64,000 nt of DNA, from positions 248,001 to 312,000 of the forward strand of contig JAPDFW010000086.1 in NCBI GenBank assembly GCA_028826165.1, read 5' to 3'. The stretch comes from Anaeramoeba ignava BMAN (lineage: Eukaryota; Protista; Anaeramoebae). Below are positions 18,742 through 41,554 of this stretch, piece after piece. The stretch's first letter is position 1. Each line of letters opens with the position of its first letter. A program made the translations under genes and the position numbers. A model generated the notes under the pieces. That model had not been told where the DNA came from. It was given only the letters and a program-made list of their open reading frames with translations, and made no database searches.

Positions 18742-19019
18742 AATTGCTAAAAAAATTTTTTTTGATAAAAAAAAAATGAAGAAATAATTTAAATTTTTGT
18801 TTCTTTTATCCTCTTTTTTTTTTTTTTTTGATCAAAAAAAAATTTTTTTTTTCTTGTTTTTTTTTGAACAAATTTGACATTGATTAGATCTTTTTTTTTA
18901 CAATTTGGAAAAAAGAAAATACTAAATTTTATCAATAATTTGAATAAAAGTAATCAAAAATTAAATAAAGAATATTAAATAATTAATTCAAATCAAATTT
19001 AAATAAAATTTTCATTTAT

Positions 19020-20575
19020 TAAATTAATATAAAATTATTCTCAATCATTTAATAACATTTAAAAGGAAATTGAAATATTTTAATAAAGATAAAAATTTAA
19101 TTTTAATAACTTTTAATAAGTGTTAATTTAGAATTAATTCAAATCAAATTTAAATAAAATTTTCATTTATTAAATTAATATTTTTAATTATTTATTAATT
19201 CAATTTTAATTATAATAAAATATATTAAAATTGAAATATTTTAATAAAGATAAAAATTTAATTTTAATAAGTTTTAATAATTATTTAATTTAGAATTATT
19301 TCAAGTCAAATTCAAATCAAATTTTCATTTATTAAAATAATATTTTTGATTATTTATTAATTCAATTTTAATTATAATAAAATATATTAAAATTAAAATA
19401 TTTTAATAAAGATAAAAATTGAATTTTAATAAGTTTTAATAATTATTTAATTTAGAATTAATTCAAATCAAATTTAAATCAAATTTTCATTTATTAAATT
19501 AATATAAAATTATTCTCAATAATTTAATAACATTTAAAAGAAAATTAAAATATTTTAATAAAGATAAAAATTGAATTTTAATAAGTTTTAATAATTATTT
19601 AATTTAGAATTAATTTAAATAAAATTCAAATAAAATTTTCATTTATTAAATTAATATTTTTGATTATTTATTAATCCAATTTTAATTATAATAAAATATA
19701 TTAAAATTAAAATATTTTAATAAAGATAAAAATTGAATTTTAATAACTTTTAATAATTATTTAATTTAGAATTATTTCAAATCAAATTCAAATCAAATTT
19801 TCATTTATTAAATTAATATTTTTAATTATTTATTAATCCAATTTTAATTATAATAAAATATATTAAAATTAAAATATTTTAATAAAGATAAAAATTTAAT
19901 TTTAATAAATTTTAATAATTATTTAATTTAGAATTAATTCAAATCAAATTCAAATAAAATTTTCATTTATTAAATTAATATTTTTAATTATTTATTAATT
20001 CAATTTTAATTATAATAAAATATATTAAAAATTGAAATATTTTAATAAAGATAAAAATTTAATTTTAATAAGTTTTAATAATTATTTAATTTAGAATTAT
20101 TTCAAGTCAAATTCAAATCAAATTTTCATTTATTAAAATAATATTTTTGATTATTTATTAATCCAATTTTAATTATAATAAAAATATATTAAAATTGAAA
20201 TATTTTAATAAAGATATATATTTAATTTTAATAATTTTTAATAATTATTTAATTTAGAATTAATTTAAATAAAATTCAAATCAAATTTCCATTTATTAAA
20301 ATAATATTTTTGATTATTTATTAATTCAATTTTAATTATAATAAAATATATTAAAATTGAAATATTTTAATAAAGATAAAAATTTAATTTTAATAAGTTT
20401 TAATAATTATTTAATTTAAAATTAATTCAAATAAAATTCAAATCAAATTTTCATTTATTAAAATAATATTTTTGATTATTTATTAATTCAATTTTAATTA
20501 TAATAAAATATATTAAAATTGAAATATTTTAATAAAGATAAAAATTTAATTTTAATAAGTTTTAATAAGTGTTAA
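19020..20575. repeat. ~162-bp AT-rich tandem array (about 10 units) downstream of BTB-TLDc gene 1
   Basis: AATAAAGAT marker recurs at ~19082, 19243, 19405, 19557, 19721, 19881, 20044, 20207, 20369 and 20531. Confidence 0.85.
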
Positions 20576-22334: not shown

Positions 22335-22790
22335 AAAAAATGAAAAATGAAAATTATTTTGATTTTAATTTTAATTTCAAATTTTTTTTATTTTATACAT
22401 TTTATTAATATTTATTTATTTAAATTAATATAAAATTATTCTCAATCATTAAATAAAACTAATAAAATATTTTAATTAATTTATTTCAAAAATGGAATAA
22501 AGAATATTAAATATTTAATTTCAAATTAATTTTATTTTATACATTTTATTAATATTTATTTATTTAAAATAATATAAAATTATTCTCAATCATTAAATAA
22601 AACTAATAAAATATTTTAATTAATTTATTTCAAAAATGGAATAAAGAATATTAAATAATTAATTTCAAATTAATTTTATTTTATATATTTTATTAATATT
22701 TCTTTGTTTAAATTAATATAAAATTATTCCCAAAAATTTAATAACATTTAAAAGGAAATTGAAATATTTTAATAAAGATAAAAATTTAAA
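22335..22790. repeat. Non-coding block with ~157-bp internal repeats, duplicated at ~31255-31710
   Basis: Shared CAAAAATGGAATAAAGAATATTAAAT and ATTCCCAAAAAATTTAATA...AAAAGGAAATTGAAAT motifs in the same orientation at both sites. Confidence 0.75.
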
Positions 22791-23140
22791 TCTAAAACAA
22801 TAAATTATTATTTTAAACATAAAATTAAATATTAAATTAAATCTATTCTCTTTTTTTTTTTTTAATTTATGATTGACGCATCTTGGGAATTATTTGGAAA
22901 GAAAATCAAAACAAAACTTGAAAGAAAGAGGAATTTTTATTGATTTGAAAAAGAAAAAGAAAAAGTAAAATTCCTAAAGCTTCTGGAATTGAAGTAAGAA
23001 ATTTGATTGAAATCCAATCAATATGGATTTCGAAAGAAAATCAATGAAATTGGAAAATTGGAAATGAATTCTTTGCTTGTGATTTTTCCTAATATCATTT
23101 CTTGTGAAATCTGTTTCATTTGGGACTTTTGCTTTCCAGT

Positions 23141-26100
23141 TCAATCAGACTAAAAAAATGAAACAAAATTCATTGTAAATAAATTAATTAGTAAACAAGA
23201 AATATTCAAAATTTTGTTCAAATTTAATTATTTGCAACGTATTTATTAAATAATAAATATTATTTTTTATAATTTAAATTTAATTTTGACTTTGATAAAT
23301 ATTTTTAGATTGAATGATTTACAAACTTTTTATTAAATAATAAATATTATTTTAATTTTTAATTTAAATTAAATTTGATTTTAATAAATATTTTTTTGGA
23401 TTTAATTATTTACAACTATTTATTAAATAATAAATATTATTTTTTTAATTTAATTTCATTTTCATTTTGATAAACATTTTTGGATTTAATCATTTACATC
23501 TAATTATTAAATAATAAATATTATTTTTATAATTTAAATTAATTTTGATTTTGATAAACATTTTTAGATTTAATTATTTACAAACTATTTATTAAATAAT
23601 AAATATTATTTTTATTTGTTAATTTAAATTAAATTTGATTTTTATAAATATTTTTGGATTAAATTATTTACTCCCTAATTATTAAATAATAAATATTATT
23701 TTTAATTTAAATTAATTTTGATTTTGATAAATATTTTTGGATTAAATTATTTACAACCTATTTATTAAATAATAAATATTATTTTTATTTTTAATTTAAA
23801 TTAAATTTTGATTTTTATAAATATTTTTGGATTTAATTTACAATCTATTTATTAAATAATAAATATTATTTTTATAATTTAAATTAATTTTAATTTTGAT
23901 AAATATTTTTAGATTTGATTATTTACTCCCTATTTATTAAAAAAATAAATATTATTTATTAATTTAAATTAAATTTGATTTTGATAAATATTTTTGGATT
24001 AAATTATTTACAATCTATTTATTAAATAATAAATATTATTTTTATAATTTAAATTGACTTTGATAAATATTTTTAGATTTGATTATTTACAAGCTATTTA
24101 TTAATTAATAAATATTATTTTTATAATTTAAATTAATTTTGATTTTAATAAATATTTTTAGATTTGATTATTTACAAGCTATTTATTAAATAATAAATAT
24201 TATTTTTATAATTTAAATTAATTTTGATTTTAATAAATATTTTTGGATTTAATTATTTACAAGCTATTTATTAAATAATAAATATTATTTTTATAATTTA
24301 AATTAAATTTGATTTTAATAAATATTTTTGGATTTGATTATTTACAGCCTATTTATTAAATAATAAATATTATTTTTATAATTTAAATTAAATTTGATTT
24401 TAATAAATATTTTTGGATTTGATTATTTACAAGCTATTTATTAATTAATAAATATTATTTTTATAATTTAAATTAAATTTGATTTTAATAAATATTTTTG
24501 GATTTAATTATTTACAGCCTATTTATTAAATAATAAATATTATTTTTATTTGTTAATTTAAATTAATTTTGATTTTAATAAATATTTTTGGATTTAATTA
24601 TTTACAATCTATTTATTAAATAATAAATATTATTTTAATTTTTAATTTAAATTAAATTTGATTTTGATAAATATTTTTGGATTAAATTATTTACAAGCTA
24701 TTTATTAAATTATAAATATTATTTTAATTGTTAATTTAAATTAATTTTGATTTTAATAAATATTTTTGGATTTAATTATTTACAAGCTATTTATTAAATA
24801 ATAAATATTATTTTTATAATTTAAATTAATTTTGATTTTAATAAATATTTTTGGATTTAATTATTTACAATCTATTTATTAAATAATAAATAATATTTTT
24901 TATTTTTTAATTTAAATTAATTTTGATTTTAATAAATATTTTTGGATTTAATTATTTACAACCTATTTATTAAATAATAAATATTATTTTTATTTGTTAA
25001 TTTAAATTAATTTTGATTTTTAATAAATATTTTTAGATTTGATTATTTACTCTCTATTTATTAAATAATAAATATTATTTTTAATTGAAATTAATTTTGA
25101 TTTTAATAAATATTTTTGGATTAAATTATTTACAAACTGTTTATTAAATAATAAATATTATTTTTATTTGTTAATTTAAATTGATTTTAATAAATATTTT
25201 TGGATTTAATTATTTACAATCTATTTATTAAATAATAAATATTATTTTTTTTAATTTAAAATTAATTTTGATTTTGATAAATATTTTTGGATTTAATTAT
25301 TTACAAACTATTTATTAAATAATAAATAATATTTTTATTTGTTAATTTAAATTAAATTTGATTTTTAATAAATATTTTTGGATTTGATTATTTACAGCCT
25401 ATTTATTAAATAATAAATATTATTTTAATTTATAATTTAAATTAATTTTGATTTTAATAAATATTTTTGGATTTAATTATTTACTCCCCTAATTATTAAA
25501 TAATAAATATTATTTTTAATTTAAATTAATTTTTGATTTTAATAAATATTTTTGGATTTAATTATTTACTTCCTATTTATTAAATAATAAATATTATTTT
25601 TTTATTTTTTAATTTGAAATTAATTTTGATTTTGATAAATATTTTTGGATTTAATTATTTACAAACTATTTATTAAATAATAAATAATATTTTTATTTTT
25701 AATTTAAATTAATTTTGATTTTAATAAATATTTTTGGATTTAATTATTTACTCCCTATTTATTAAATAATAAATAATATTTTTATTTTTAATTTAAATTA
25801 ATTTTGATTTTAATAAATATTTTTGGATTTGATTATTTACAGCCTATTTATTAAATAATAAATAATATTTTAATTTATAATTTAAATTAATTTTGATTTT
25901 AATAAATATTTTTGGATTAAATTATTTACTCTCTATTTATTAAATAATAAATATTATTTTTATTTGTTAATTTAAATTAATTTTGATTTTGATAAATATT
26001 TTTGGATTTAATTATTTACTTCCTATTTATTAAATAATAAATATTATTTTTTTAATTTAAATTAATTTTGATTTTAATAAATATTTTTGGATTTAATTAT

Positions 26101-29100
26101 TTACTTCCTATTTATTAATTAATAAATATTATTTTTTAATTGAAATTAATTTTGATTTTAATAAATATTTTTGGATTTAATTATTTACAAACTATTTATT
26201 AAATAATAAATAATATTTTTATTTGTTAATTTAAATTGATTTTAATAAATATTTTTGGATTTAATTATTTACAAACTATTTATTAAATAATAAATATTAT
26301 TTTTAATTTAAATTAATTTTTGATTTTAATAAATATTTTTGGATTTAATTATTTACAACCTATTTATTAAATAATAAATAATATTTTTATTTGTTAATTT
26401 AAATTGATTTTAATAAATATTTTTGGATTTAATTATTTACAGCCTATTTATTAAATAATAAATATTATTTTTATTTTTAATTTAAATTAATTTTGATTTT
26501 AATAAATATTTTTGGATTTAATTATTTACAGCCTATTTATTAAATAATAAATAATATTTTTTTTAATTTAAATTAATTTTGATTTTAATAAATATTTTTG
26601 GATTTAATTATTTACAAACTATTTATTAAATAATAAATATTATTTTTTATTTTTTAATTTAAATTAAATTTGATTTTGATAAATATTTTTGGATTTAATT
26701 ATTTACAAACTATTTATTAAATAATAAATATTATTTTTTATTTTTTAATTTAAATTAATTTTGATTTTTAATAAATATTTTTGGATTTGATTATTTACTT
26801 CCTATTTATTAAATAATAAATATTATTTTTAATTTAAATTAATTTTGATTTTAATAAATATTTTTGGATTTGATTATTTACAATCTATTTATTAAATAAT
26901 AAATATTATTTTTAATTTTTAATTTAAATTAATTTTGATTTTAATAAATATTTTTGGATTTAATTATTTACAAACTATTTATTAAACAATAAATATTATT
27001 TTAATTTTTAATTTAAATTAATTTTGATTTTAATAAATATTTTTGGATTTAATTATTTACTTCCTATTTATTAAATAATAAATATTATTTTTTATTTTTT
27101 AATTTAAATTAATTTTGATTTTGATAAATATTTTTGGATTTAATTATTTACTTCCTATTTATTAAATAATAAATATTATTTTTATTTTTAATTTAAATTA
27201 ATTTTGATTTTAATAAATATTTTTGGATTTAATTATTTACAATCTATTTATTAAATAATAAATATTATTTTAATTTTTAATTTGAAATTAATTTTTGATT
27301 TTGATAAATATTTTTGGATTTAATTATTTACAATCTATTTATTAAATAATAAATATTATTTTTTTTAATTTAAATTAATTTTGATTTTGATAAATATTTT
27401 TGGATTTAATTATTTACTCTCTATTTATTAAATAATAAATATTATTTTATAATTTTTAATTTAAATTAATTTTAATTTTAATAAACATTTTTGGATTTGA
27501 TTATTTACAAACTATTTATTAAATAATAAATATTTTTGTTTTTAATTTAAATTAATTTTGATTTTAATAAATATTTTTGGATTTAATTATTTACTCTCTA
27601 TTTATTAAATAATAAATATTAATTTTTATTTTTAATTTAAATTAATTTTGATTTTGATAAATATTTTTGGATTTAATTATTTACTTCCTATTTATTAAAT
27701 AATAAATATTATTTTTATTTTTAATTTAAATTAATTTTGATTTTGATAAATATTTTTGGATTTAATTATTTACAATCTATTTATTAAATAATAAATATTA
27801 TTTTAATTTTTAATTTAAAATTAATTTTGATTTTAATAAATATTTTTGAATTTAATTATTTACAGCCTAATTATTAAATAATAAATATTATTTTTATTTT
27901 TAATTTGAAATTAATTTTGATTTTGATAAATATTTTTGGATTTAATTATTTACAATCTATTTATTAATTAATAAATATTATTTTTTTTAATTTAAATTAA
28001 TTTTGATTTTGATAAATATTTTTGAATTAAATTATTTACAAGCTATTTATTAAATAATAAATTTTATTTTTATAATTTAAATTAATTTTGATTTTGATAA
28101 ATATTTTTGGATTTAATTATTTACAATCTATTTATTAATTAATAAATATTATTTTTTTAATTTAAATTAAATTTGATTTTTAATAAACATTTTTGGATTT
28201 AATTATTTACAAACTATTTATTAAATAATAAATATTATTATTTTTAATTTAAATTAATTTTGATTTTGATAAATATTTTTGGATTTAATTATTTACAATC
28301 TATTTATTAAATAATAAATTTTATTTTTAATTTTTAATTTAAATTAATTTTGATTTTGATAAATATTTTTGAATTAAATTATTTACAAACTATTTATTAA
28401 ATAATAAATAATTTTTTTAATTTAAATTAAATTTGATTTTTGATAAATATTTTTGGATTTAATTATTTACAATCTATTTATTAAATAATAAATAATTTTT
28501 AATTTTTAATTTAAATTAAATTTGATTTTGATAAATATTTTTGGATTTAATTATTTACAAGCTATTTATTAAATAATAAATTTTATTTTTAATTTAAATT
28601 AATTTTGATTTTAATAAATATTTTTGGATTTAATTATTTACAAACTATTTATTAAATAATAAATTTTATTTTTAATTTTTAATTTAAATTAAATTTGATT
28701 TTGATAAATATTTTTGGATTTAATTATTTACTCCCTAATTATTAAATAATAAATATTATTTTTAATTTAAATTAATTTTTGATTTTGATAAATATTTTTG
28801 GATTTAATTATTTACAAACTATTTATTAAATAATAAATTTTATTTTTAATTTTTATAATTTAAATTAATTTTGATTTTGATAAATATTTTTGGATTTAAT
28901 TATTTACAATCTATTTATTAAATAATAAATATTATTTTTAATTTAAATTAATTTTGATTTTAATAAATATTTTTGGATTTAATTATTTACAAGCTATTTA
29001 TTAAATAATAAATTTTATTTTTAATTTAAATTAATTTTGATTTTAATAAATATTTTTGGATTTAATTATTTACAAGCTATTTATTAAATAATAAATTTTA

Positions 29101-31016
29101 TTTTTAATTTAAATTAATTTTGATTTTAATAAATATTTTTGGATTTAATTATTTACAATCTATTTATTAAATAATAAATATTATTTTTAATTTAAATTAA
29201 TTTTGATTTTGATAAATATTTTTGGATTTAATTATTTACAAGCTATTTATTAAATAATAAATATTATTTTTATAATTTTTTAATTTAAATTCAATGAATT
29301 GCGAACACAAATTTGATATATTTTTGTGTATTTTTTATCTCAAGAAAAATATTATTTTGTTGAAACATATTTGATCATGTATTCTCTTTCAAAATTTGTT
29401 TTATTTTTTGAAGAAAAGCATTTTAATGAGGACGTTTTGATTTTAATTATTTATATATGTATAATAATATCAATATATCAGAAAAAGGTTGAGAAATTTC
29501 CAGACATTTCCAAAAAGTGTTTTGATCTGAACCTATTAATTTTCTGATAATAATTGCCTTGAGAGTGAATTTTAAACAATTCAAAGAAAAAATTTTAAAA
29601 TGAATTTTATAAAACTAAAATTTCAAATATATGAAATCGATCAGAATCTTATCAAAATTAATTCTATTATTTCTATATCATTTCTCAAGATAATACTAAT
29701 ATCTTTTTTTTTATTAGAAATGGAATTTTTTAAATTATTCTAATCAATTTTTCTGATTTTTTATTTTAAATGATGAATATTCTATTTATTTTTGTTCTGT
29801 AATATATTTTCTTTTTTGTCAATTTGGATGTTTTATTCATAATTCCAAAGAGAAATAAGAAAACAAAGATCGAAACAAATCATAAAAAATATGTATAAAA
29901 GTTCCTTAGAATCTTCAACTTTATAAATTTTTTGAAAGAGAAAAAAATTTTTTTTTGAAATTAACTCAAAATTGTCCCTAGTTTGACTTTATAATATTAT
30001 TCTATTTAATTATTTACTTTCTATTTATTCAATAAAAAATTTTTTTTTTCAATTTTATAAATTTTAGAGTTCAATTATTTACCAGCTATTTTTTAAATAA
30101 TTTATTTGTTTTTCAATTTGAATATATTTTTGATTTTATAAATATTTTTTTTCCAATTTAATTATTTACTGCCTATTTATTAAATAATAAATAATTTTTT
30201 TTAATTTGATTTTATAAATATTATTTTTTTTCAATTTAATTATTTACTGCCTATTTATTAAATAATAAATATGAATTTTGGTTTAAATTAATTTGATTTT
30301 ATAAATATTATTTAGAGATTTAATTATTTACAAACTGGTTATTAAAATAATAAATATTAATTTGTTTAATTTAAATTCATTTTGATTTGATGTATATTTT
30401 TGGATTTAATTATTTACAATCTATTTATTAAATAATAAAAATTTTTATTCAAATGATTATTTTGAATTTGATAAATATTTGAGATTTTCATTATTTACAA
30501 TCTATTTGTAATAATTAATTTTAGGTTTCATATGAAAAATTTTATTAAGAACGGAAAATTATATGGAAAATCCAAATTGTATATTTGGAAATCAAAAAAT
30601 ATAAATAGAAAATAAAATGAAGAAATTCAAAAATAATTTATGAAAAAAAATGGTTATAAATAAGTACCTTTTTGGAGATTTGATTTATTTTTCGGTTTTG
30701 GTGATTTGGATTTTGATTTGGATTTTGATTTGGATTTTGATTTTGATTTGGATTTTGATTTGGATTTTGATTTTGATTTGGATTTGGATTTGGATTTAGA
30801 TCGTTCTTGTTTTTGTCTTTCTTGTGTCTTTCGATTAAATCTTGAATCTTTTCTTGTATTTCAGTATTTTGTTCTTGTATTTTCCTTATCTCTTCTTGTA
30901 TTTGATCTTGATTTGTATCTTTATGATGATGTTATTGAGAATTTTAATTTAAAATTGAATTTGAAATTGAATTTTAAATTTGATTTTGAATTCATTTATC
31001 TTGAAGGCTTACTCAT
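23141..31016 (-). CDS. Predicted membrane protein gene with about 76 single-codon microexons (coiled-coil/NQ-rich N-terminus plus two hydrophobic segments)
   Basis: Exon 1 ATGA 31016-31013, intron GTAAG...TAAAG 31012-30919, exon 2 30918-30668 (85 codons total, ends phase 0 at AAG|GTACTT). Then 7 microexons at 30501-30018, 69 microexons at 29242-23323, and a candidate last exon TTTTTTTAG|TCTGATTGA from 23149. Hand-derived; no transcript evidence. Confidence 0.65.
23225..29290 (-). repeat. Tandem array of 69 intron+microexon units (79-93 bp period) plus one degenerate terminal unit
   Basis: Minus-strand consensus GTAAATAATTAAATCCAAAAATATTTATTAAAATCAAAATTAATTTAAATTAAAAATAATATTTATTATTTAATAAATAG followed by a variable triplet. 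Confidence 0.92.
30005..30510 (-). repeat. Seven more diverged intron+microexon units
   Basis: AG|NNN|GTAAAT at plus-strand positions 30499, 30418, 30332, 30248, 30170, 30083 and 30018, giving ATT ATT TTT GCA GCA CTG AAA. Confidence 0.85.
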
Positions 31017-31674
31017 TTTTCTTTTTGTAATTTTTTTTATTAGAAAAGGAAAAAAAAAGGGAAAATTAGTTTTGTTTTTTGAATCGATAAAATAAATATT
31101 TTAAAAGTATAATGAATAAGTAATTAATAAGTATTTTATTTTTAAATAATTTATAATTTTTGTTTTTATTATTATTTATTATTAAATTTATATTTATTTT
31201 TTTAAAATCAAGAAAAATATTTACTTCGATAATTAAAAATTTGGAAAAAAAAAATGAAAAATGAAAAATGAAAAATATTTTGATTTAATTTTAATTTTTT
31301 TTATTTTATATATTTCATCAAATTTTCATTATTTAAAATAATATAAAATTATTCTCAATAATTTAATAAAATTAATAAAATATTTTAATTAATTTATTTA
31401 AAAAATGGAATAAAGAATAATTAATAATTAATTTCAAATTAATTTTATTTTATATATTTTATTAATATTTCTTTGTTTAAAATAATATAAAAATTATTCT
31501 CAATCATTAAATAAAACTAATAAAATATTTTAATTAATTTATTTCAAAAATGGAATAAAGAATATTAAATAATTAATTTCAAATTAATTTTATTTTTATA
31601 TATTTTATTAATATTTCTTTTGTTTAAATTAATATAAAATTATTCCCAAAAATTTAATAGTATTTAAAAGGAAA

Positions 31675-32385
31675 TTGAAATATTTTAATAAAGATAAAAA
31701 TTTAATTTTAATAAGTTTTAATAATTATTTAATTTAAAATTAATTCAAATCAAATTCAAATAAAATTTTCATTTATTAAAATAATATTTTTAATTATTTA
31801 TTAATCCAATTTTAATTATAATAAAATATATTAAAAATTAAAATATTTTTAATAAAGATAAAAATTTAATTTTAATAACTTTTAATAATTATTTAATTTA
31901 GAATTATTTCAAATCAAATTTAAATAAAATTTTCATTTATTAAATTAATATTTTTAATTATTTATTATTCAATTTTAATTATAATAAAATGTATTAAAAT
32001 TAAAATATTTTAATAAAGATAAAAATTTAATTTTAATAAGTTTTAATAATTATTTAATTTAGATTTATTTCAAATCAAATTCAAATCAAATTTTCATTTA
32101 TTAAAATAATATTTTTGATTATTTATTATTCCAATTTTAATTATAATAAAATATATTAAAAATTGAAATATTTTAATAAAGATAAAAATTTAATTTTAAT
32201 AACTTTTTAATAATTATTTAATTTAAAATCAATTCAAATCAAATTCAAATAAAATTTTCATTTATTAAATTAATATTTTTAATTATTTATTATTCCAATT
32301 TTAATTATAATAAAATATATTAAAATTGAAATATTTTAATAAAGATAAAAATTTAATTTTAATAAGTTTTAATAAGTGTTAATAA
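31675..32385. repeat. ~162-bp tandem array (about 5 units) downstream of BTB-TLDc gene 2
   Basis: Same unit as 19020-20575. Confidence 0.85.
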
Positions 32386-36192: not shown

Positions 36193-39100
36193 TTATTTTT
36201 TCTCAATTTCCATATCTTGATTATCATTATTTTTTTCATCATCTTTTTTTTCATCATCTTCTTTTTTATCATCTTCTTTTTTTTCATCATCTTTTTTATC
36301 TCCATCTTTTTTTAAAGATTCAAGAGCAGATTTAATACGATCATCATTTGGATTAACACCTGGTAAACTTAATAAAACAGAATCAATTAAATCTTGATTT
36401 TGAAGAACATTTCCAAGATCAAATGCAGAATCGAATTGATTATCTTGATTTTGATTTGATTCTGTTTGTTTTTCTTTATCTTTTTCTTCATTTGATTTAT
36501 CTTGTGATTCGTTTATTGATCTTTCTAAAATTAATTTCATTTGTTCATCTTCATTTAATTCAGATATATTAACTTGATCTTGTTTTTCTTCTTGCATTTG
36601 TTGTTGTTCTTGTTCTTGATTTTGATTTTCATCATCATTTGTTTCTGAATTATCATCTCCACTAAATTCTGCAAGTGACATTTCGATTGCTCTTCTAGTT
36701 TCTTCATCATATTCCGAATCGTCTTAATTTTATAAATAATTTTATAAATAATTTTATAAATAATTTTATATTTAATTTTATAAATAATTTTATAAATAAT
36801 TTTATAAATAATTTAATAAATAATTTTATAATTAATTTTATAATTAATTTTATAATTAATTTTATAAATAATTTTATAAATAATTTTATAAATAATTTTA
36901 TTAATAATTTTATATTTAATTTTATAAATAATTTTATAAATAATTTTATAATTAATTTTATAAATAATTTTATAAATAATTTTATATTTAATTTTGTATT
37001 TAATTTTTGTATTTAAATTTTATAATTAATTTTATAATTAATTTTATATTTAAATTTTATATTTAATTTAATAAATAATTTTATAAATAATTTTATATTT
37101 AATTTTATAAAATAATTATTATATTTAATTTTATAAATAATTTTATAAATAATTTTATAAATAATTTTATAAATAATTTTATATTTAATTTTATAAATAA
37201 TATTATATTTAATTTTTATATTTAATTTTATAAATAATTTTATATTTAATTTTATATTTAAATTTTATAATTAATTTTATATTTAATTTTATAAATAATT
37301 TTTATATTTAATTTTATATTTAATTTTATAAATAATTTTTATATTTAATTTTATAAATAATTTTATAAATAATTTTATAAATAAATTTATATATAATTTT
37401 ATATTTAATTTTATATATAATTTTATAATTAATTTTATAAATAATTTTATAAATAATTTTATAAATAATTTTATATTTAATTTTATAAATAATTTTATAA
37501 ATAATTTTATATTTAATTTTATAAATAATTTTATAAATAATTTTATATTTAATTTTATATTTAATTTTATAAATAATTTTATAAATAATTTTATAAATAA
37601 TTTTATAAATAATTTTATAAATAATTTTATAAATAATTTTATAAATAATTTTATAAATAATTTTATAAATAATTTTATAAATAATTTTATAAATAATTTT
37701 ATAAATAATTTTATAAATAATTTTATAAATAATTTTATATATAATTTTATAATTAATTTTATAAATAATTTTATAAATAATTTTATATTTAATTTTATAA
37801 ATAATTTTATAAATAATTTTATAAATAATTTTATAAATAATTTTATAAATAATTTTATAAATAATTTTATATATAATTTTATAATTAATTTTATAAATAA
37901 TTTTATATTTAATTTTATAAATAATTTTATATTTAATTTTATAAATAATTTTATAAATAATTTTATAAATAATTTTATAAATAATTTTATAAATAATTTT
38001 ATAAATAATTTTATAAATAATTTTATAAATAATTTTATAAATAATTTTATAAATAATTTTATAAATAATTTTATATTTAATTTTATAAATAATTTTATAT
38101 TTAATTTAATAAATAATTTAATAAATAATTTAATAAATAATTTTATAATTAATTTTATAATTAATTTTATAAATAATTTTATAAATAATTTTATAAATAA
38201 TTTTATAAATAATTTTATATATAATTTTATAAATAATTTTATAAATAATTTTATAAATAATTTTATAAATAATTTTATATATAATTTTATAATTAATTTT
38301 ATAAATAATTTTATAAATAATTTTATAAATAATTTTATAAATAATTTTATATATAATTTTATAATTAATTTTATAAATAATTTTATATTTAATTTTATAA
38401 ATAATTTTATAAATAATTTTATAAATAATTTTATAAATAATTTTATATATAATTTTATAATTAATTTTATAAATAATTTTATATTTAATTTTATAAATAA
38501 TTTTATAAATAATTTTATAAATAATTTTTATATATAATTTTATATTTAATTTTATAAATAATTTTATAAATAATTTTATAATTAATTTTATAAATAATTT
38601 AATAAATAATTTTATAAATAATTTTATATTTAATTTTATAAATAATTTTATAAATAATTTTATATATAATTTTATAAATAATTTTATATTTAATTTTATA
38701 AATAATTTTATAAATAATTTTATAATTAATTTTATAATTAATTTTATATTTAATTTTATAAATAATTTAATAAATAATTTTATAAATAATTTTATATTTA
38801 ATTTTATAAATAATTTTATATTTAATTTAATAAATAATTTTATATTTAATTTTATAAATAATTTTATAAATAATTTTATAAATAATTTTATAAATAATTT
38901 TATAAATAATTTTATAAATAATTTTATATATAATTTTATAATTAATTTTATAAATAATTTTATATTTAATTTTATAAATAATTTTATAAATAATTTTATA
39001 AATAATTTTATAAATAATTTTATAAATAATTTTATAAATAATTTTATAAATAATTTTATAAATAATTTTATAAATAATTTAAATAATTTTATAAATAATT

Positions 39101-41554
39101 TTATAAATAATTTTATAAATAATTTTATAAATAATTTTATATTTAATTTTATAAATAATTTTATAAATAATTTTATATTTAATTTTATAAATAATTTTAT
39201 AAATAATTTTTATAAATAATTTTATAAATAATTTTTATATATAATTTTATAATTAATTTTATAAATAATTTTATATTTAATTTTATAAATAATTTTTATA
39301 TTTAATTTTATAAATAATTTTATAAATAATTTTATAAATAATTTTATAAATAATTTTATAAATAATTTTATAAATAATTTTATAAATAATTTAATAAATA
39401 ATTTAATAAATAATTTTATAAATAATTTTATAATTAATTTTATAAATAATTTTATAATTAATTTTATAAATAATTTTATATTTAATTTTATACTTAATTT
39501 TATACTTAATTTTATATTTAATTTTTATAAATAATTTTATAAATAATTTTATATTTAATTTTTATATTTAATTTTATAATTAATTTTATAAATAATTTTA
39601 TATTTAATTTTATAAATAATTTTATAATTAATTTTATAAATAATTTAATAAATAATTTTATAAATAATTTTATAAATAATTTTATAAATAATTTTATAAA
39701 TAATTTTATATTTAATTTTATATTTAATTTTATATTTAATTTTATAATTAATTTTTATATTTAATTTTATAAATAATTTTATAAATAATTTTATAAATAA
39801 TTTTATAAATAATTTTATATTTAATTTTATAAATAATTTTATATTTAATTTTATAAATAATTTTATAAATAATTTTATATTTAATTTTATAAATAATTTT
39901 ATAAATAATTTTATATTTAATTTTATTAATAATTTTATAAATAATTTTATATTTAATTTTATATTTAATTTTATATTTAATTTTATAAATAATTTTTATA
40001 AATAATTTTATAAATAATTTTATAAATAATTTTATAAATAATTTTATAAATAATTTTATAAATAATTTTATAAATAATTTTATAAATAATTTTATAAATA
40101 ATTTTTATAATTAATTTTATATTTAATTTTATAAATAATTTAATAAATAATTTTATAAATAATTTTATATTTAATTTTATAAATAATTTTATTAATAATT
40201 TTATATTTAATTTTATATTTAATTTTATAATTAATTTTATAATTAATTTTATAAATAATTTTATAAATAATTTTATATTTAATTTTATTAATAATTTTAT
40301 ATTTAATTTTATATTTAATTTTATAATTAATTTTATAATTAATTTTATAAATAATTTTATAATTAATTTTATAAATAATTTTATAAATAATTTTATAAAT
40401 AATTTTATAAATAATTTAATAAATAATTTTATAATTAATTTTATAATTAATTTTATAAATAATTTTATAAATAATTTTATATTTAATTTTGTATTTAATT
40501 TTGTATTTAATTTTGTATTTAAATTTTATAAATAATTTTATAAATAATTTTATAAATAATTTTATATTTAAATTTTATAAATAATTTTATAATTAATTTT
40601 ATAAATAATTTTATATTTAATTTTATAAATAATTATATAATTAATTTAATAAATAATTTTATAAATAATTTTATAAATAATTTTATAAATAATTTTATAA
40701 ATAATTTTATAAATAATTTTATAATTAATTTTATATTTAAATTTTATATTTAAATTTATATTTAATTTATATTTAAATTTTATAAATAATTTTATATATA
40801 AATAAAAACCTTCCATTTCTTGAGGTTGCTCATTAGAATCAGAAGACTGAGGTTTTGGAGTAGATTGAGAATCATTTCTCCTAGCATTTTCCTCCAAAGA
40901 AAGCCTCAAAGCCAAAGCCAATTCAGGATCAATATTTGGATCTACACCAAAATCATTAGAAAAATCTGAAGGATTAGCATCACCAAGAATAAGGGAGCCC
41001 TGAATTTGGTCCGAGAGGATAACGCCCGAAATTGGGGGGATATGGACAATATGGCTGTTATCGTTCTTATTAACGGTTTCTATAAGAGCGTCTAATTTTT
41101 CACGGTTTGAATCAGTTTCTCCAAAATTAACGATATCTAAAGCAACATTATTTTTTTTAAGCATATTTCCGACACGGAGAAGATCTTCGGAACTTGCTTT
41201 AACGGGGCTGCCGACAAACATTATAATGCGTTGAGCTTGTTGCCTGTTCATTCGATGTTTAAGTGCAAGTTGTGCAATATAAAGGCTTGTCACGTGATCT
41301 GAATCTCCTGCAATTTGCACCTCGTGAAGAGACGCTAAAATCTTGCCAACATCGCTTGTAGGCGCGATTACTAGTTTCGGTTGTGATCCTCCCATTGATA
41401 ATACTCCAACTGTGTTCTCAAAATTGCTGTTCGTTTTTCTTCCTGTTATTATGTTGACTGAATCTAATTGTGCTTCAAATCTTGTCGGTGAAAAATCAGA
41501 ATTTCGCATGTATTCGCTATTGTCAATACATATTAATGTTCCTTCTAATACCAT
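36193..41554 (-). CDS. RPN10: 26S proteasome ubiquitin receptor Rpn10/PSMD4
   Basis: Exon 1 41554-40810 (vWA domain MVLEGTLICIDNSEYMRN, UIM DPELALALRLSLEE), intron 40809-36723, exon 2 36722-36193 (further UIMs, SVLLSLPGVNPND). Phases match (G|AC); 424 aa. Confidence 0.95.
36725..40800. repeat. 4-kb (TTTTATAAATAA)n 12-bp satellite forming the Rpn10 intron
   Basis: Directly visible, almost purely A/T. Confidence 0.95.

Follow-up and report, generated by a model that had tools for sequence, protein, structure and literature searches.

Can a long A+T-rich tandem repeat form the 3' half of a gene and be written into protein one codon per repeat unit? This question is raised by an array on the minus strand of a 64,000-nucleotide (nt) stretch of the Anaeramoeba ignava BMAN genome (C87:248001-312000 of an assembly of 42,843,398 bases in 147 contigs), which we refer to as the window. 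A sequence-only reading of the window had proposed that the array, although it resembles a minisatellite, is a series of about 76 single-codon exons, each enclosed between an AG acceptor and a GT donor. From the anatomy of the locus, the codon behavior of the triplets, paralogous arrays elsewhere in the genome and units of the same kind that lie outside repeats, we conclude that the array is very probably a chain of approximately 76 near-identical introns split by one-codon exons.

The start and end of the gene were found where they had been proposed. The coding part of exon 1, an ATG plus one A (31016-31013), runs into a GTAAG donor, which is followed by a predicted 94-nt intron with GT..AAG borders (31012-30919) and by a 251-nt second exon that ends in phase 0 (30918-30668). 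Together, these exons encode 85 amino acids, a polar product with a coiled-coil-like stretch, NP/NQ repeats, and a basic end. Exon 2 belongs to no Pfam family, and the suggested genome-wide scan for its paralogues yielded low-complexity look-alikes only and no true paralogue. A 166-nt intron (30667-30502) leads to the first core of the array (30501-30499). Units 1 to 7 (30501-30018; I-I-F-A-A-L-K) are set in intron copies that are more diverged and are followed by a 775-nt intron (30017-29243), absent from the earlier account, that contains approximately 700 nt of nonrepeat DNA; in the DNA that was read, this insert has no open reading frame, no terminal inverted repeats, and no second copy. 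Beyond it lies the homogenized array of units 8 to 76 (29242-23323), with a period of 79 to 93 nt, whose triplets comprise eight codon types (ATT, TTT, CTT, GCT, GAA, GGA, AGA, and GTT). A dead 77th unit with AC..GC borders (23238-23236) precedes the terminal exon, the coding part of which reads Ser-Asp-stop in phase 0 (23149-23141).

The assertion that 76 units keep AG and GT stood, since both dinucleotides are present in 76 of the 77 cores between 30501 and 23236, but the total count and the uniform size did not. Three nucleotides are enclosed in 73 cores, which read AG-NNN-GTAAAT; four are enclosed in one core (25488-25485), where the extra G is frameshifting if real; and two are enclosed in two cores near the 3' end (23499-23498 and 23415-23414), which are either decayed or the result of homopolymer slips. 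Because each of the odd-sized units is one homopolymer base away from the common core, they may be assembly slips. With the single 775-nt exception, the introns of the array are 62 to 90 nt long (median, 83 nt), and both their size and their composition match those of A. ignava introns, which have a modal length of 76 nt and a G+C content of 8% (PMC11550330 supplement). The GTAAAT donor had been likened to that of conventional introns in the window; on comparison, both the donors and the acceptors of the array matched the ordinary ones. The cores have the AG/GT flanks, in a host-typical and frame-preserving context, that are expected of GT-AG microexons. Differences between units affect 5% of the sites in the flanks and 54% of the triplet positions, and the backbone is 95% A+T, with only 20 G residues outside the cores in 5600 bases; the cores are thus not a product of chance. 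The further argument that AG and GT are better kept than their neighbors proved weak within the arrays, because the neighboring bases are equally constant (93 to 100%). Rfam gave no matches between positions 22500 and 31500.

The triplets behave as codons. The four arrays that share this core contain 238 canonical units, in which 23 types of triplet specify 17 amino acids and none is a stop. The G+C content by triplet position is 46, 32, and 1.7%, and no type apart from TGG, AAG, and CTG ends in G or C. For their respective amino acids, 22 of the 23 types rank first or second in codon usage among the genes of the window. The log-likelihood of the triplet types was best in frame 0 (-88, versus -99.5 and -96 in the other frames and -131 for the array background), and the scarcity of G and C at the third position was evident when types rather than copies were counted (P = 0.004). 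The absence of stops among the triplet types was not significant on its own (P = 0.45).

Units of the same kind are found in nonrepetitive DNA, where homology constrains them. In an ankyrin gene (L066:1-690, on contig C42), the triplets AAA, TTT, and GGA are the only AG-N(1-9)-GT matches in approximately 560 nt; they are located between an exon that ends in LNLQD and an exon that starts with KTPF, so that their inclusion would give D-K-F-G-K-T-P. The public model of a sister ankyrin gene joins D directly to KTP and has three-residue gaps relative to the intronless ankyrin protein encoded in the window. Furthermore, of 16 related ankyrin exons, 6 have a GGA (Gly) unit 64 to 88 nt upstream, where 0.004 would be expected. 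Homology thus shows tandem one-codon exons to be required in these predicted runs of three.

A second line of evidence comes from a subtelomeric BTB family, in which six units (P-P-K-E-E-P and variants) lie in nonrepetitive introns between phase-0 coding exons. Units 1 to 4 are homologous to units 1 to 4 of the genes that carry the arrays on C1 and C57. In five BTB-family paralogues, the homologous introns that hold these four successive units have diverged until only 78% of columns are identical, and every AG, every GT, and every 3-nt spacing has been kept. The sixth unit matches the array core and is a likely seed. This BTB/coiled-coil/ankyrin family is represented by L036:3457-3999 (C28), with copies on C25, C57, C138, C140, and C137 and at the end of C1. 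The C25 and C57 copies are without the BTB exon, and their genes seem to end after two more units; the C25 copy adjoins a long open reading frame with reverse-transcriptase-like motifs (L035:6929-10000), as in an element that is not of the long-terminal-repeat type. Public model P0001 (L034:2850-2970, on C57) can be read only with a TA..AG intron that ends at the acceptor of the first unit; exactly one TA-AG intron is listed for the BMAN genome (PMC11550330).

The scan for tandem AG-NNN-GTAAAT arrays that had been proposed revealed three further arrays of the same core, with approximately 30, 35, and 105 units, behind unrelated coding exons. Two of these arrays (C1:409.3-413.1 kb and C57:593.6-597.9 kb) follow BTB/BACK and coiled-coil exons; the third and longest (C137:609.5-622.8 kb; approximately 105 units) follows an exon that encodes RING and protein kinase domains. 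In the genome, 210 sites match the 22-nt core exactly, and a reversed control matches nowhere. The four arrays have separate intron backbones (approximately 72, 76, 87, and 108 nt) around the common core; all of them start after the phase-0 end of a coding exon and finish with a short phase-0 stop exon. Behind the window array is a 3' flank with an AATAAA motif (22898-23061). With the sequences that follow the C1 and C57 arrays it has 74 to 76% identity, and it is a probable shared 3' untranslated region. Copies of this flank were located at window positions 22898-23061, C57:593294-593467, C1:408998-409166, and C13:460464-460535; on the plus strand, the three copies that were read contain a similar but frameshifted peptide. 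Within one intron of the C137 array there is a 4.1-kb transposon (C137:615.2-619.3 kb; L039:5222-9289) that encodes a DDE_Tnp_4 transposase and a second open reading frame and has short G/C-rich ends, as in PIF/Harbinger-like elements.

Across the whole genome, the pattern AAATAG-N3-GTAA occurs 1184 times, compared to 89 times with N2 and 119 times with N4. We therefore estimate that there are approximately 1000 3-nt units, including those of further arrays with irregular spacing that are known from the positions of the pattern. Stop triplets account for only 12 of the 1184 matches, close to the number expected if roughly 100 of the matches arose by chance. Other irregularly spaced AAATAG-NNN-GTAA runs were observed at C1:1057924-1067996 and C1:942331-942796 (minus strand), with different hydrophobic triplets (ATT, ATG, ATC, TTG, CTT, and GGG) that include G or C in the third position. 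A three-unit cluster at C137:749067-749806 reads TGA, TGA, and TGG and may be in another phase or represent a dead array. Taken together, these indirect tests, namely, codon composition, the lack of stops, the excess of 3-nt spacing, the diverged copies, and the ankyrin complementation, strongly support the original proposal that the triplets are phase-0 one-codon exons.

If the triplets of the window array are joined in the mRNA, as we infer from the genomic sequence, up to 76 of approximately 163 residues would be encoded one codon at a time; about 161 residues, nearly half of them from one-codon exons, had been suggested. Read in order, the triplets specify an 18-residue hydrophobic run that is free of charge, a loop that holds nearly all of the E and R residues, and, at the end, another hydrophobic run of 18 residues. 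In a post hoc test against shuffled order, the two runs had a P value of 0.003 to 0.008. Identical codons stand side by side no more often than expected (13 versus 10 ± 3), and the middle segment is not significantly amphipathic (P values of 0.06 or more). The simplest reading of the predicted protein is a cytosolic N terminus followed by a membrane hairpin. The other arrays would encode different tails of low complexity, most of them acidic, basic, or polar, so that array composition is specific to the locus.

The units also carry traces of how the array may have changed. The association between flank variants and the triplets that they enclose is loose (6.09 versus 6.49 flank differences for same-triplet pairs; P = 0.02), and many near-identical flanks enclose triplets that differ at two or three bases. 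Near the 3' end of the C137 array, there is a threefold duplication of a block of nine units; between two copies of this block, 612 intron bases contain 2 substitutions, and two codons have each changed at 2 bases. This pattern fits unequal exchange combined with short conversion between units, under selection against stops and frameshifts. It can be envisioned that the array arose by the tandem amplification of one intron-plus-codon unit, like those found in short runs within nonrepetitive introns, and that minisatellite-like turnover has since acted upon it, so that unequal exchange would gain or lose residues and conversion would swap whole codons, always in frame. Dead units would be absorbed into longer introns. 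Since introns occur every three coding bases, tandem duplication fits better than transposon insertion.

The surroundings of the gene contain other repeats. It is bracketed by intergenic tandem repeats of 144 to 164 nt that have no AG-N-GT cores (22370-22744, 31285-32375, and 18981-20568), and a 4-kb satellite with a 12-nt unit, nearly free of G and C (36725-40801), lies within an Rpn10-like gene, apparently as an intron between the open reading frames at 41554-40646 and 36681-36193.

It is likely, in our judgment, that the one-codon exons at the window locus are functional. The explanation that we favor, with somewhat less assurance, is that the locus is a small and apparently unannotated gene, the 3' half of which consists of one-codon exons that are constitutive or mostly included, with near-complete inclusion. 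Each repeat unit would then consist of a single codon and a short spliceosomal intron of the ordinary type; every intron would be removed by intron definition, and the joined codons would add up to 76 residues to the 85-residue coiled-coil/NQ-rich N terminus, ending the protein in a putative membrane hairpin anchor of hydrophobic run, charged loop, and hydrophobic run. Several observations weigh against this explanation. The ankyrin evidence covers runs of two or three units and is no proof for a run of 76, and the codon statistics show coding ancestry rather than present expression. A search with exon 2 found no protein for the window locus in the protein collection (54 to 170 amino acids), and searches with the BTB, kinase, and ankyrin exons matched genome-derived NCBI models only and no transcript-derived proteins; those models skip units or begin the last exon at the acceptor of a unit and run on into the intron. 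A search of sequencing runs gave shares of 0.04 to 0.05; the four runs that were mapped contained A+T-rich fragments from other organisms and gave no coverage of exon 2, a result that is neutral as to transcription. Exon 2 of both the C1 and the C57 genes is frameshifted in the assembly. Finally, each array has one to five dead units, and three window units are out of frame as assembled, so skipping or decay must occur.

These observations bear on two unlikely alternatives that accept the ancestry of the triplets. The window copy may descend from functional microexons and now be silent, or its array may be skipped, may be retained, or may be lost to polyadenylation at a site within, for instance, the 700-nt insert; the array would then persist by repeat dynamics only. 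The lack of a protein match for the locus, the absence of a conserved domain from exon 2, the inserted DNA in the window array and the transposon in the C137 array, the decay at the 3' end, and the frameshifted sister genes all favor such a fate; however, neither a stop nor an A/T-drifted triplet is found among the 73 canonical units here or the 238 overall, in a backbone that is 95% A+T, both splice-site G residues are kept in 76 of 77 units, and the start, phases, and stop are all consistent. Alternatively, the units may be real exons of a combinatorial cassette, each transcript keeping a different in-frame subset so that many protein variants result, a possibility that we also consider improbable. 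Because all of the units are symmetric and their splice sites are near-identical, each donor could be joined to any of the acceptors that lie downstream of it; the arrays tolerate dead units, and there are reported precedents in the Schistosoma MEGs (PMC8293314) and the Tuber nank genes (PMC4986451). The order of the triplets looks selected as a whole, however, given the two 18-residue hydrophobic runs, and the ankyrin hairpins need all three of their units.

Two other explanations deny that the triplets are coding. That the array is a neutral minisatellite whose hypervariable spot falls between AG and GT by chance is very improbable. The flanking bases are as constant as AG and GT within the arrays, and A+T-rich tandem repeats abound in the genome, in line with such an origin; a neutral repeat should carry variants at the background mutation rate and no reading-frame signal, and the triplets were found to carry a codon signal. 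The frame-0 codon bias without stops, the 10-fold genome-wide excess of 3-nt spacing, the presence of the motif in nonrepetitive introns and ankyrin hairpins, the location of all four arrays behind phase-0 coding exons, and the lack of such cores in the other repeats of the window all argue against neutrality. The near back-to-back arrangement of acceptor and donor would also suit recursive-splicing ratchet points, at which one long intron is removed stepwise and no triplet enters the mRNA. Ratchet points have zero-length exons and offer no reason for codon bias; moreover, 83-nt introns need no stepwise removal, and the K-F-G complementation contradicts this model, which we regard as barely tenable.

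If the array is spliced as the favored explanation predicts, it would be among the most fragmented coding regions described, with approximately 76 3-nt exons in a row and approximately 105 at another locus. The spliceosome would have to join codon-sized exons one after another, with no space for exon definition or for an exon-junction footprint. The arrays would offer a case in which intron gain by tandem duplication could be tested directly, as could protein evolution in which repeat turnover changes one residue at a time and never breaks the frame. Roughly a thousand exons would be absent from the public A. ignava annotation, and repeat-masked A+T-rich minisatellites of other protists may likewise hide coding sequence. 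We suggest only tentatively, and hold it somewhat doubtful, that the intron-plus-codon repeat is a portable, protein-writing minisatellite that has been amplified behind unrelated genes, adding one residue per unit and swapping codons in frame by conversion, and that at the window locus it has built a membrane-hairpin domain de novo via approximately 77 successive splicing events per transcript.

The window array is reminiscent of several known systems. Minisatellite variant repeats turn over as tandem units among which variants are scattered, blocks are duplicated, and sequence is exchanged in patches, and introner-like introns are present in many near-identical copies; unlike in these systems, the variant site here is a codon and the constant part is an intron. 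We found no account in the literature of a homogenized minisatellite with intron-plus-codon units in which an entire protein segment is encoded and no publication that joins Anaeramoeba with microexons, which are not mentioned in the A. ignava genome paper or its supplements (PMC11550330). Isolated microexons of 1 to 3 nt, such as those of RPS24 (3 bp; PMC12686416), cytohesin-1 (diglycine; PMC6314551), plant APC11 and VPS55 (1 nt; PMC8831610), and Amphidinium (3 nt; PMC12584245), indicate that spliceosomes can join exons this small and that annotation pipelines miss them; they are single or paired and do not form long homogenized arrays. The Schistosoma MEGs have 10 to 20 exons per gene of 3/6 to 81 bp (mostly 15 bp), separated by unrelated introns of 0.1 to 5 kb, and encode a signal peptide (PMC10526429, PMC8293314). 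Like them, the window gene is predicted to have a coding region in which short symmetric exons predominate and carry most of the coding variation and in which such exons can be omitted with the frame intact (73 of 77 units are 3 nt long and in phase 0). Unlike them, it has 3-nt exons, up to 76 to 105 of which stand in a row in these arrays, clonal introns of 62 to 90 nt, and a polar N terminus in which no signal peptide is evident by direct reading. The closest parallel may be the nank genes of Tuber melanosporum, which are reported to have tens of codon-sized exons that are alternatively spliced (PMC4986451, PMC13449251). Many codon-sized exons per gene are common to both systems, here on genomic evidence, and A. 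ignava has them in ankyrin hairpins as well. The window gene differs from the nank genes in having neither a NACHT nor an ankyrin domain, and its sister arrays lie behind BTB/BACK or RING-kinase exons; its 76 units follow one another without interruption, have near-identical introns, and are predicted to specify an entire hydrophobic segment instead of residues in loops; and the lineage of Tuber is unrelated to that of A. ignava. Codon-sized exons are thus known in principle from the nank genes and the MEGs; what is new is a homogenized intron-plus-codon minisatellite that is predicted to encode an entire protein segment, and it is a member of neither family.

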